Shown here: positions 37,338-40,945 of the stretch, piece after piece
Layout: each line of letters begins with the position of its first letter
How positions within the stretch are numbered: the first letter of the stretch is position 1
Assembly (NCBI GenBank): GCA_965240325.2
Contig: OZ251234.1
Coordinates: 1,116,001 to 1,180,000 of the forward strand
Source: Rebecca billardiae RCC1528
Taxonomy: Eukaryota > Protista > Haptophyta
Reading direction: 5' to 3'
Length of the DNA stretch: 64,000 bases
Translations under genes and position numbers: made by a program
The notes under the pieces: model-generated
The model's database searches: none
The model's input: only the letters and a program-made list of their open reading frames with translations
What the model was told of the DNA's origin: nothing

Positions 37338-40300
37338 TCACGTAAGAAGGAGGATACCATCACCCTCGGCGCTCAGGCGCGCCGACTCACGCGCCGACTC
37401 CTCTTCCGCGCTTCGCTGCACCGCGGGCAGCAGGTCGCGCACGACAGCGTTCACCTGTGGCGCGCCCGCGAGCTCGACCGCGTGGAGGAGCGCGCGCAGC
37501 CCGTCGTCCAAGCGCGACGCGCTCGCCGAGCTGCGCAGCGTGTCCGCCACGTGGAACGCGTCGAAGGCGGCCACCACCCTGCGCCGCTCCTCGTCGGTGC
37601 CGCCGATCACCATCACCTCCACGTCCTGGACCGAGCCGCCCGTCGCGCGCCACGCGAGCAGCCCGCCCACGCACGCGAGCCGCTCGGTGAAGCTCGGTCC
37701 GACGACGCACAGCAGCCGGGCCGAACGGCACATCGCAATCACGCTGTGCTCGAGGGCTTGCTGCCTGTCCAGGCTCGGGTCGGCCGAGATCGCGTCGAGC
37801 CACACGCGCGGCCACTCGCCCGTGAGCGCGTGCTGCCGCCGCGCCCACAGCTGCAGCGCGCGCGCGCGCTGCTTGGGGTCATCCCGGTGCGAGTGGAGGA
37901 TGAACACGCCGATCCGCTCCGGCGCGAGCGAGCGGTCTGCGGTCGGGTCGACCCGGGTGGTCGAGAGACCGCGCGGAAGCACGTGCAGCGAGATGGCGCT
38001 CGGCCTCGCCGCCCTCGTCGCGGAGGGGATGGAGGGCCACGCGAGGAGGCGGCACGCCGAGCGCAGCGGCTGCACGACCAGCGAACGGAGCAGCGGCCGG
38101 AGCCGCCAGCAGCGGCGCGGCTCGGCCGCCGTTGGGGCGGGCAGCTGGACAGCACCGCGGTGCCGGCCGTCGCTCCCGTCGGCCACGGCAGTGGGCAGCT
38201 GCATCGTGCGTAGCGCTTCGGGCGAGAGCTGCGCGCCGCGCAGCGCGCGCAGCTCCTGCGTGACGAGCAGCCGCGGCGCACGCAGCGCGCCCGCGCCGCG
38301 CTCGCCGTGGCCGATCAGCGGCGCCAGGGCCGCGCCCAGCCGGTCGGCCTCGGACACGGCCGCCGAGCCGCACGCCGTGCGCGTGAGCATGGCGTGCGCG
38401 CGCGCGCGCGAGTCTGGCAGTGCGTGCAGCCACAGCAGGGCGACCAGCAGCAGCCAGAAGACGGCGATGGCGGTCAGCATGGCTGCCGAGTCCGCCACGC
38501 CTTGGCGCCGCTCGTCGATGCACCGACCGAAGATGAACGTCGCCGTTGGCAGACTCATGGTCATCACGACCAGCTTCGAAAACCACCAGAGCGCCTCGAT
38601 GCGCAGCGTCTGCGAGGGCACCGGCGCGAGCTTACGAGTGCGAGCCCACACGTGCGCCAGCCCGAGCACGAGGTACACAGCCGCGCAGTTGTGCAGGCCG
38701 AGCCGCACGCCGTTGGCCACGTGCATGGCGTCGGTGGCGGTCGTGCCACAGTACCGGATCGAGCCTGGCTCGGCAGCGAGCATGCGCGGGATGAGCGGCG
38801 TCGAGATCACCACGTTGGTGCAGAAGCCGTGGAGAAGCACCACCGTGTACACGGTCGTGGCGCGCCGGTGCGACTCGGTCGGCTGCAGCGCGAGCGAGAT
38901 GAGCGTGTGCGAGTGCGAAAACATCGCGATCGTCGAGAGGCCCAGCACGCCGCCCCACGCGCCGCGCAGCCTCCCGGTCGATGAGATGAACGCGTACACA
39001 CCAAACCCGAGCACGCTGAGAAGCGTGCCGCTCAGCGCGGCCACGCGCGTCACGTACTCCAGGATCGCGCGCGTCGTGGTCACCGAGCTCTCGAGCAGCG
39101 CGATCATGTGCTCGGGGGAGAGCACGCCGTCGTCGTCGTCCTCGTGGTCGTCGTCGTTCCGCCCGGCTGCCCGCAGGCCGCTCTCGCCGCGGCGCGCCCG
39201 CTCGGCAGACCTCGCGATGTTGGGCATGCCTTGCGACGTGCGCAGCTCGTGCTCGTCGTGCCGCTCGATCATCGACGCGAGCCGGCGCTGGAATGCGCTC
39301 GACGGTGGGCTGCGGCGCGTTGTGCGCTGATGCCGCTCATCTGCGGGGGCAGCCGTGGTCGATGCCGTTGCCCTGACCACATCGTCTGCCACGCAGCGGC
39401 GGCGCGGACGCAGGGGCCGGCAGCGCACGGCGGCGCGGAGCGCGAGGTGAGCCGGCGCGACCACGGCGCGCACGGCGCGTGTCGCGCGCCACGGCGCCGC
39501 GCGCCCGCCCGCCGCGCGCACGATACACGTTGCGCAGCAGCTGCATGACGACCTCGACGTTGACGGAATGCCCGGCGGTCAGGAAGAGCGCGTGCGCCGT
39601 GGCGGGCGTGCGCAGCGTCCTTCGGACATCCGCACGCGGGAGACGCGCAAAGGCCTCCTCGAGCCGCCCGGGCAGAGCGGCCAAGAGCGCGCACACGGCG
39701 TACGGCTTCACAAAGCTGATGAGTGTGATGAGCACCGGGCGGCGAACGCGCACGGCGCGGAGCGCGGGGCAGGCATGCCGATCGGTCAGGCTCGCCATGG
39801 CATACAGTGAGGAGCAGCGCATGTCGGGAGGGCGTGCGCGCGCAGGCGCGCGGCGGAGACGCGAGCGCGAGCGCGGCGCGCACCCGTTCAGGTGCCTGAG
39901 CATGTTCTCATCCGCGCCCAAGCCGTCGAGGCCGCGCGCCTCGAACTCGGCCGCGCCCACGCCGCAGAAGGTCTCAAAGTACCACTGCTTGGTACAGCGC
40001 GCGGGGAGCTTGCCTGTGCACAGCCGCTGCCAGAGGCCCTCGAGCCCGTGGAACTGCGCGTTGGCGAGATATGCCATCAGCTGCGCGGCCAGCGACGCGC
40101 GAGTCGTCGTGCCGTCATTTGCAGCGCAGCCGCGTCAAGACGGCGCGGGCTGGGCTGGCGTGCTGCCCTCCCCGCCAGGCGGGGCATGCTTCATTCACGG
40201 CCGCAGTAGTCGAGAACAGGCGCGCGCGCGCGACAAACTCGTGCGCGCGGCGCGCGCGCGCGTGCGCACGCGCGCGCGTGCGCACCGGTGAGTTCGTGCG

Positions 40301-40945
40301 CTCGGCGAAGGATCGCGCGAGCTGCATCGGCAGCAGCGGCACCGCGTGTCGGCTCACGGCGGTGAGCGGCAGCCCGTACCTGAGGCAGAACTTGTACACG
40401 GCCGCGGCTGCGTCGCGGTCGAGCTCGTTGTTGACGGACGAGTCGGGCTCCCATCTGCTCTTGGCCTCGTCGTACGTAAGCCCGGCCTGCACGACGACGC
40501 GCGCCACCTTGCACAGCACCAGCGCCTGGTCCGCCAAGATGGCGTCCGCCAAGTCGCGCAAGCTCGAGATGCACACGATGTACACCGACCCATTGCTCGC
40601 GGACTCGAGCGTGCTCATCAGAGCGAAAAGGCCATCGGGCTCGAGGCGCCCTCTGTCGACGGCATCGAAGCCCGGCAGAGCGAACTCGTGCGGGGCGGGC
40701 TCCTCCTTCGTCCCTTCGGAGCCCACAGCCACTGGCACGGCGTGCGAGCCGATCGCGTCGAGCAGGCAGCGCGCGAGCTGCGCACGCCGCTCAGCCTGGC
40801 CGCCTCCGTTCGCGATGACGAGCCGCAGGTTCACATCGCCGCGCTTGTGCAGCGTGCCCGCGATGAGGATGGCCTTGGCGTCGTCGGGATCCGGGCCGGG
40901 ATCCGTGATCAGCACGATGTTGCGCGCGCTCTTCGCGGGCCACAT
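37338..40945 (-). CDS. Nucleoside-hydrolase-like + 6TM + TIR-like fusion protein (4 exons)
   Basis: Exons 40945-40286, 40080-39884, 39715-39522, 39385-37338 join in frame through GT-AG introns. IU-NH-like ITDPGPDPDD and NNELDRDAAAAVY; six hydrophobic segments; TIR-like FILHSH...VWLD...LLCVVGPSFTERLAC. Confidence 0.75.

Follow-up and report, generated by a model that had tools for sequence, protein, structure and literature searches.

A predicted XopQ/HopQ1-like hydrolase fused to six membrane helices and a TIR-fold domain in the haptophyte Rebecca billardiae RCC1528

XopQ, an effector of plant-pathogenic bacteria whose role had long been puzzling, was reported to hydrolyse the TIR product 2' cyclic ADP-ribose (2'cADPR) to ADP-ribose (ADPR), and mutation of two conserved Asp residues, D120 and D399, abolished this activity (preprint 10.64898/2026.06.15.732069, June 2026). 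Eukaryotic homologues are not mentioned in that preprint. In 2018, HopQ1-like proteins (HLPs) of Aureococcus, Thalassiosira and Emiliania were described as an algal clade (PMC6019455). Moreover, membrane-anchored TIR genes of Gephyrocapsa huxleyi, encoding proteins with a conserved Glu, were found to be induced during infection with Emiliania huxleyi virus (EhV) (PMC12489294). In this study, a stretch of 64,000 nucleotides from the haptophyte Rebecca billardiae RCC1528 (GenBank assembly GCA_965240325.2, contig OZ251234.1, positions 1,116,001 to 1,180,000; referred to as the window, whose numbering is used throughout) was analyzed with respect to a gene located on the minus strand at 37338-40945. 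The predicted product combines a XopQ/HopQ1-like hydrolase domain, six membrane helices and a TIR-fold domain, and in both soluble domains a key catalytic residue is replaced. It is proposed that this copy serves as a non-catalytic subunit, with a sensing or regulatory role, in an algal family of TIR-nucleotide signalling proteins, a reading that is considered evenly poised.

Gene structure and family architecture

The gene model comprises four exons which, as claimed in the original prediction made from the letters of this window, join in frame across introns of phases 0, 2 and 1. The start codon (ATG) is located at position 40945 on the minus strand, with an alternative in-frame ATG at 40993. 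Exon 1 (40286..40945, minus strand; 220 codons) encodes the bulk of the XopQ/HopQ1-like nucleoside-hydrolase domain and is followed by the phase 0 intron 1 (40081..40285, minus strand). The middle of the hydrolase domain (YLANAQ..GLEGLW..LPARCTKQW.FETFCG) is encoded by exon 2 (39884..40080, minus strand; 197 nt), whereas exon 3 (39522..39715, minus strand; 194 nt) holds its late motif, KPYAV. Between these two exons, intron 2 (39716..39883, minus strand, phase 2) splits the Gly codon of the family motif LNGFVKPY, and intron 3 (39386..39521, minus strand, phase 1) splits the His codon of the family motif YHEVV, which reads YHDVV in this copy. Exon 4 (37338..39385, minus strand; 681 codons plus the stop codon at 37338-37340) encodes, in this order, the end of the hydrolase domain, an acidic linker, the six membrane helices, a spacer rich in Ala, Arg and Pro, and the TIR-fold domain. 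GT..AG borders are present in each of the introns, and the joined frame of 1032 codons contains no internal stop. Furthermore, codon periodicity is strong in all four exons in the frame of the model, with GC contents of 0.86-0.92 at third codon positions (GC3) and of about 0.45-0.54 at second codon positions (GC2), and it is absent from the introns. The motifs on which the original prediction relied were located at 40880-40906 (TDPGPDPDD), 40406-40432 (NNELDRDAA) and 37656-37682 (RLACVGGLL).

Alignment with family members revealed that each exon junction restores the consensus of the protein family to which the gene belongs. At the junction of exons 1 and 2, ERTNSP/LMAYL corresponds to ERT..P/.M.YL in the family; LN(G)FVKPY is regained at the junction of exons 2 and 3 when the hydrolase exons are aligned as separate rows with the family; and the junction of exons 3 and 4 yields NVY(H)DVV as compared to TYHEVV in the family. 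Exon 2 matched family proteins in local phmmer searches with expectation values (E) down to 1e-30, collinear with the matches of exon 1. Intron 3 thus interrupts the final conserved hydrolase motif, whose remainder is encoded by exon 4 together with the helices and the C-terminal domain; all of these parts hence belong to one gene. A relative on a Logan contig (L001), the single match of a word search using the C-terminal 208 residues, is devoid of an intron at the site of intron 3, and its hydrolase tail, helices and TIR domain are encoded by one uninterrupted open reading frame (ORF), with the earlier hydrolase (PF01156) exons directly upstream. The hydrolase, the membrane helices and the TIR part are therefore assigned to one spliced gene with a predicted multipass membrane protein of 1032 residues as its product, in agreement with the fusion originally proposed. 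Two separate neighbouring genes, one for the hydrolase and one for the membrane-TIR part, are very unlikely: a gene caller did split the L001 relative into two products, but this split represents a caller artefact at introns, the hydrolase motif cut by intron 3 is resumed in exon 4, and all three parts occur together in a transcript and in annotated gene models of other species.

A search with exon 1 against 1.84 billion representative proteins yielded 702 relatives, among them 87 at E 1e-30 or better, and many of these proteins have a length of 830-1340 residues and an N-terminal hydrolase domain. Of the database proteins retrieved via the hydrolase, at least 22 also carry a homologous C-terminal domain (local phmmer, E 1e-30 to 1e-8), and in all of the 22 but P0004 five or six hydrophobic segments lie between both domains. 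The family includes an MMETSP transcript (Transcript_23604) as well as NCBI gene models from Pavlovales sp. CCMP2436 and Diacronema lutheri; its named members, namely this transcript and KAJ1636960.1, KAG8460936.1 and KAG8470857.1, are kept in public databases as hypothetical proteins. In most members the active sites of both domains look intact. Based on these comparisons, the succession of hydrolase, six helices and TIR domain is an old, conserved and multi-member algal architecture.

Two family members deserve separate mention. In P0004 (947 aa), helices are followed by a TIR-like part (about 248-457), a XopQ-like hydrolase (477-689 onwards) and further helices. This protein was considered as a case of a second domain order, which it would be only if real; the simplest explanation is a pair of tandem family genes read as a single ORF. 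P0001/L001 was considered as a strict ortholog of the gene described here and was rejected in this respect: it is a family member, yet the TIR domain of this copy is closer to that of P0017. The next genes called on L001 match RelA_SpoT (5651-7606, minus strand), a type comprising alarmone synthetases/hydrolases, and GDA1_CD39 (9124-11205, minus strand), a nucleoside phosphatase family; this family member thus has nucleotide-handling neighbours.

Hydrolase domain, TIR-fold domain and membrane block

Exon 1 alone passed the gathering score of the Pfam family PF01156 (IU_nuc_hydro; 39 bits versus 34.2). The nucleoside-hydrolase homology stated in the original prediction was thereby recovered. 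In phmmer searches against the PDB, exon 1 matched XopQ with E 5e-12 and a canonical nucleoside hydrolase with E 0.07, the best solved relatives being the XopQ structures 7jlu, 4kl0 and 4p5f. Likewise, the algal family profile matched XopQ with E 8e-43 across 303 positions, and canonical nucleoside hydrolases with 2.6e-9 in the N-terminal half only. By homology, the N-terminal domain is XopQ/HopQ1-like and distinct from canonical IU nucleoside hydrolases.

The non-canonical Asp cluster of this copy, TDPGPDPDD, aligns with TDPNKDPDD of XopQ; both the NN motif and the equivalents of D116 and D120 have been preserved, D120 corresponding to the second Asp within the cluster. The late motif reads KPYAV as compared to KPYDV in the family, with the Ala codon (GCC) at 39697-39699 when residues are counted along the sequence. 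A census revealed YD or FD at this site in about 37 of 45 informative family sequences. In the profile alignment, the family Y-D pair falls on XopQ chain residues 411-412, corresponding to Y398-D399 at an offset of 13, and with this offset D120 and D399 both land on Asp in the 7jlu chain. The suspicion that the late (H/Y)D motif is degenerate was hence borne out, with Ala located at the position equivalent to XopQ D399.

An alternative to the non-catalytic subunit proposed here is that the protein represents a still-active, membrane-tethered degrader, in which the exchange of Asp for Ala is tolerated, TIR-made nucleotides of catalytic paralogs are cleared and the dead TIR domain serves for docking, the whole acting as a negative regulator. 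The intact N-terminal Asp cluster and NN motif, the retained TIR fold and the nature of the XopQ activity, which amounts to signal destruction, are in line with this explanation. However, the late Asp is conserved in the large majority of relatives counted above, it belongs to the two Asp at which mutation eliminated the activity of XopQ, and its counterpart in canonical nucleoside hydrolases binds the catalytic Ca2+. A degrader function of this copy is accordingly rated as unlikely.

The TIR-fold core extends over 37374..37916 (minus strand), corresponding to residues 17-197 of the folded piece 37341-37964. An AlphaFold2 model of the C-terminal domain, built from an alignment with 22 relatives, reached a predicted local distance difference test (pLDDT) value of 90.1 and a predicted template modelling (pTM) score of 0.84. 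Comparison of this model by means of Foldseek placed plant TIRs from receptors of the nucleotide-binding leucine-rich repeat type (NLRs) at the top of a list consisting mostly of TIR domains (RPP1, RPS4, RUN1, AbTir, SPARTA; E from 9e-5), and the 50 matches listed by VIA-align were without exception TIR domains, the best of them reaching Z 11.3 over 145 residues. The family profile gave weak but correctly placed matches to TIR chains (SIGIRR, 0.023). Based on the model, a TIR fold (flavodoxin-like alpha/beta) is assigned to this domain with confidence. The HET profile (PF06985) matched neither this copy nor the exon of the neighbouring paralog encoding the TIR core at E up to 10.

At the column of the TIR catalytic Glu, this copy has Gly (GGG, 37662-37664), the second Gly of RLACVGGLL and three residues past the conserved Cys. 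Glu is present at this column in 14 of the 23 aligned members and Asp in one, whereas the remaining eight, among them this copy, have another residue. The family pattern, L.C..EL, carries Glu three residues after the conserved Cys, as is the case in plant TIRs. The TIR-like C-terminus without catalytic Glu that had been read from the letters is therefore upheld by both fold and alignment. A further suggestion, namely that a C.DQ motif is degenerate in this copy, was discarded: the consensus of the subfamily is C.DP.L, from which this copy departs only by the exchange of Cys for Ser.

The membrane block (38379..39101, minus strand) is characterized by a conserved L-x-P-T motif after helix 2, which is common to the relatives and the neighbouring paralog. 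Its AlphaFold2 model consists of six long helices with a moderate pLDDT of 78, and according to hydropathy analysis of 20 relatives the corresponding region contains five or six hydrophobic segments, supporting the six transmembrane segments originally predicted. A Foldseek search of the block against the PDB returned no match at E 0.001 or better. Weak similarity to a class-B G protein-coupled receptor-like bundle (TM about 0.4) was judged generic. Pfam scans of the membrane block, the C-terminal domain and the exon of the paralog matched only DUF347 and DUF456, at non-significant scores, and these matches were dismissed. An Atlas feature search with the membrane block retrieved only unnamed haptophyte clusters, at values <0.9. 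The even number of helices, the lack of a signal peptide and the presence of a TIR domain argue for a location of the hydrolase and TIR domains on the same side of the membrane. As had been proposed, this side presumably is the cytosol.

A further explanation is that of an integrated decoy, in which a factor of a pathogen or virus would be baited by the hydrolase-like domain and its modification reported by the protein. A degenerate hydrolase site would suit a bait, for which activity is not needed, and the plant TIR-NLR Roq1 recognises XopQ (PDB 7jlu). Nevertheless, the fusion is ancient and widespread, and its hydrolase sites are mostly intact. Moreover, neither NB-ARC/NACHT nor LRR or other repeat domains were among the Pfam matches, and no viral relative was found in a single-protein scan of viral contigs, a limited scan that detects close relatives only. 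A decoy function is thus regarded as distinctly improbable. The analogy with integrated domains of plant NLRs drawn in the original prediction is not supported: the fusion is conserved in a multi-member family with a usually intact hydrolase site, and NB-ARC and LRR domains were not detected.

A neighbouring paralog, representing a separate gene, is located about 15 kb away at 56157-59562. It resembles the gene described here in having a homologous membrane block and TIR core, and differs from it in being without a hydrolase domain and in keeping the catalytic Glu. Its TIR-core exon (57788..58018, minus strand) contains RLWCIIELF at 57788-57814, as had been noted, and matched the C-terminal domain of this copy in BLASTP (E 2e-7), with Gly pairing with the Glu of RLWCIIELF; similarity between the two membrane blocks is weak and collinear (E 0.006). 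The first intron of the paralog (58019-58407, minus strand) consists mostly of short GC-rich tandem repeats (GCGGGGTG/GCGGCG units) and splits its TIR domain right after the FISHS strand.

Just downstream of the 3' end of the hydrolase-TIR gene, a long (TA)n microsatellite is located at 36600-36760 of the window, reading IYIYIY.../YIYIYI... in several ORFs on both strands. Further flanking ORFs encode an SNF2/Helicase_C protein (29067-33124, minus strand), a TANGO6/RTP1-like protein (42111-46229, minus strand) and an ABC1 atypical kinase (46268-48424, plus strand). These represent ordinary housekeeping genes with no evident tie to the hydrolase-TIR gene.

Degeneracy and proposed role of this copy

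For the family as a whole, a signalling module is proposed in which the TIR part would make a signal derived from nicotinamide adenine dinucleotide (NAD), namely of the cyclic ADPR type, and the XopQ-like part would bind and open such a nucleotide, acting as off-switch, timer or receptor. Signal maker and breaker or sensor would thus be tethered to a membrane module within one polypeptide. The original prediction had put forward a role of the hydrolase part in handling TIR/NAD-derived products; this idea gains weight, since the closest solved relative, XopQ, has been reported to hydrolyse 2'cADPR. Given that both catalytic residues are lost in this copy while the rest of the protein stays conserved, a non-catalytic subunit is favoured. 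It may bind an ADPR-type ligand without efficient turnover, or it may bind catalytic paralogs via its TIR fold, and would thereby sense or tune the pathway.

Several observations weigh against this proposal. The gene model at this locus is based on sequence comparison, and in a window with a GC content of ~70% long ORFs arise easily, those of several hundred codons being frequent by chance, so that an intact frame alone is weak evidence. An antisense ORF of 690 codons (37258-39330, plus strand; GC3 0.90) overlaps exon 4 and mirrors the sense codons. Regarding the TIR domain, the Pfam TIR model did not match the C-terminal domain of this copy at E up to 10. Of the two profiles named in the original prediction, IU_nuc_hydro was matched by exon 1, whereas TIR_2 was unmatched in this copy and was touched by three of the 23 family members (best E 0.016). 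Concerning the hydrolase, the single-site inactive mutant of XopQ is D120N (preprint 10.64898/2026.06.15.732069), and the equivalent of D120 is kept in the algal copy. Finally, XopQ Y279 pairs with Val in the algal family, as counted from the profile alignment, and the ligand may for this reason differ from 2'cADPR.

In order to evaluate the degeneracy, conservation of this copy was compared with that of its relatives. It has lost both the TIR Glu (Gly instead) and the late hydrolase Asp (Ala instead), and this double degeneracy is what is particular to it; its remaining conservation resembles that of the relatives. Averaged over the family, identity amounts to 0.49 in the hydrolase and to 0.28 in the TIR domain; neither value departs from mid-range, and the branch of this copy in the TIR tree has a length of 1.24 (median 1.25). 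P0081 and P0109, which look dead throughout, show a hydrolase identity of 0.37-0.38. On the poorly resolved TIR tree, loss of the Glu requires at least four changes, and Glu-less members recur. The late Asp is missing in four of eight Glu-less as compared to one of 14 acidic members (Fisher p 0.039, with no correction for relatedness, the four including a pair of sisters). Both substitutions in this copy represent single changes from A, namely from a GAG-type Glu codon to GGG and from a GAC-type Asp codon to GCC. The A-to-G and A-to-C direction would be expected under GC-biased mutation or gene conversion and fits drift or tolerated change.

These data also bear on the explanation that this copy is a decaying paralog in a large, fast-turning family, which is heading towards a pseudogene and whose frame has stayed open as stops are rare in GC-rich DNA. 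Decay would agree with the absence of both key residues, with the presence of long chance ORFs in the region and with changes from A to G or C, as GC-biased drift would yield them. On the other hand, the three introns keep GT..AG borders and the correct phase, 1032 codons are free of frameshifts and stops, and both domains exhibit family-average conservation, whereas the dead-looking P0081 and P0109 are clearly lower in hydrolase identity. In addition, Glu-less members recur in several lineages, including expressed or annotated sets. Decay is therefore seen as unlikely, though slightly less so than a degrader function.

The non-catalytic subunit can also be placed within a more far-reaching reading, considered quite unlikely as a whole, according to which the family represents a complete TIR pathway in one polypeptide and this copy is a receiver only. 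The TIR domain would make a cyclic ADPR-type signal, the XopQ-like domain would be receptor and timer in one by opening the nucleotide slowly, and the six-helix block would be a gated effector, e.g., a pore. This copy would answer the signals of Glu-bearing paralogs, such as the neighbour at 56157-59562, without destroying them. If this reading were true, the bacterial effector XopQ would descend from, or mimic, a host-type signal-handling domain.

Comparison with known systems

The components of the fusion family have known counterparts, namely HopQ1-like hydrolases in algae, TIR domains, and haptophyte membrane-TIR genes (PMC12489294), whereas no description of the hydrolase-membrane-TIR fusion itself was found in the searchable literature. 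The HLPs (PMC6019455) share the same kind of hydrolase domain; the analysis in that study concerned the hydrolase domain only, with no mention of TIR or transmembrane parts. In the G. huxleyi TIR proteins, as described (PMC12489294), membrane helices at the N-terminus precede an intracellular TIR domain, and neither a hydrolase fusion nor added domains were reported for them.

Enzymatic TIR domains such as those of plant NLR and TIR-only proteins (RPP1, RUN1, RPS4), of Thoeris ThsB and of SARM1 share the fold of the C-terminal domain (Z 9-11). The plant TIRs carry a WC..E motif, like most members of the algal family, whereas this copy has Gly at the position of the Glu. The TIR domain described here is further distinguished from these enzymes by its location behind six membrane helices, by the lack of NB-ARC and LRR domains and by being unmatched by Pfam TIR models. 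Another point of comparison is provided by the CARF-domain ring nucleases of type III CRISPR systems, in which the signal-binding domain also degrades its ligand and slow hydrolysis times the response. This likeness is an analogy only, fold and ligand being unrelated to those of the algal family.

Members of the family represent direct candidates for learning which nucleotides are produced by TIR proteins of algae, organisms about whose antiviral immunity very little is known. Moreover, its intact and naturally degenerate copies provide ready natural comparisons for separating catalysis from binding.

The closest counterparts of the hydrolase domain are the XopQ/HopQ1/RipB effectors of plant-pathogenic bacteria (4kl0, 4p5f, 7jlu), which belong to the same PF01156 branch, share the Asp cluster and can be aligned over the whole domain. 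XopQ is a secreted effector, whereas the algal domain occurs in a host protein, where it is joined to membrane helices and a TIR fold; furthermore, Y279 of XopQ contrasts with Val in the algal family and D399 with Ala in this copy, and the activity of XopQ has been reported, while the algal domain is known from its sequence. The occurrence of a XopQ-type domain and a TIR domain on the same polypeptide, in a conserved marine algal family, may be regarded as a natural 'Rosetta stone' link between both activities. This fusion suggests that the handling of TIR signals by XopQ-type enzymes is not confined to pathogens but occurs in eukaryotic hosts as well.

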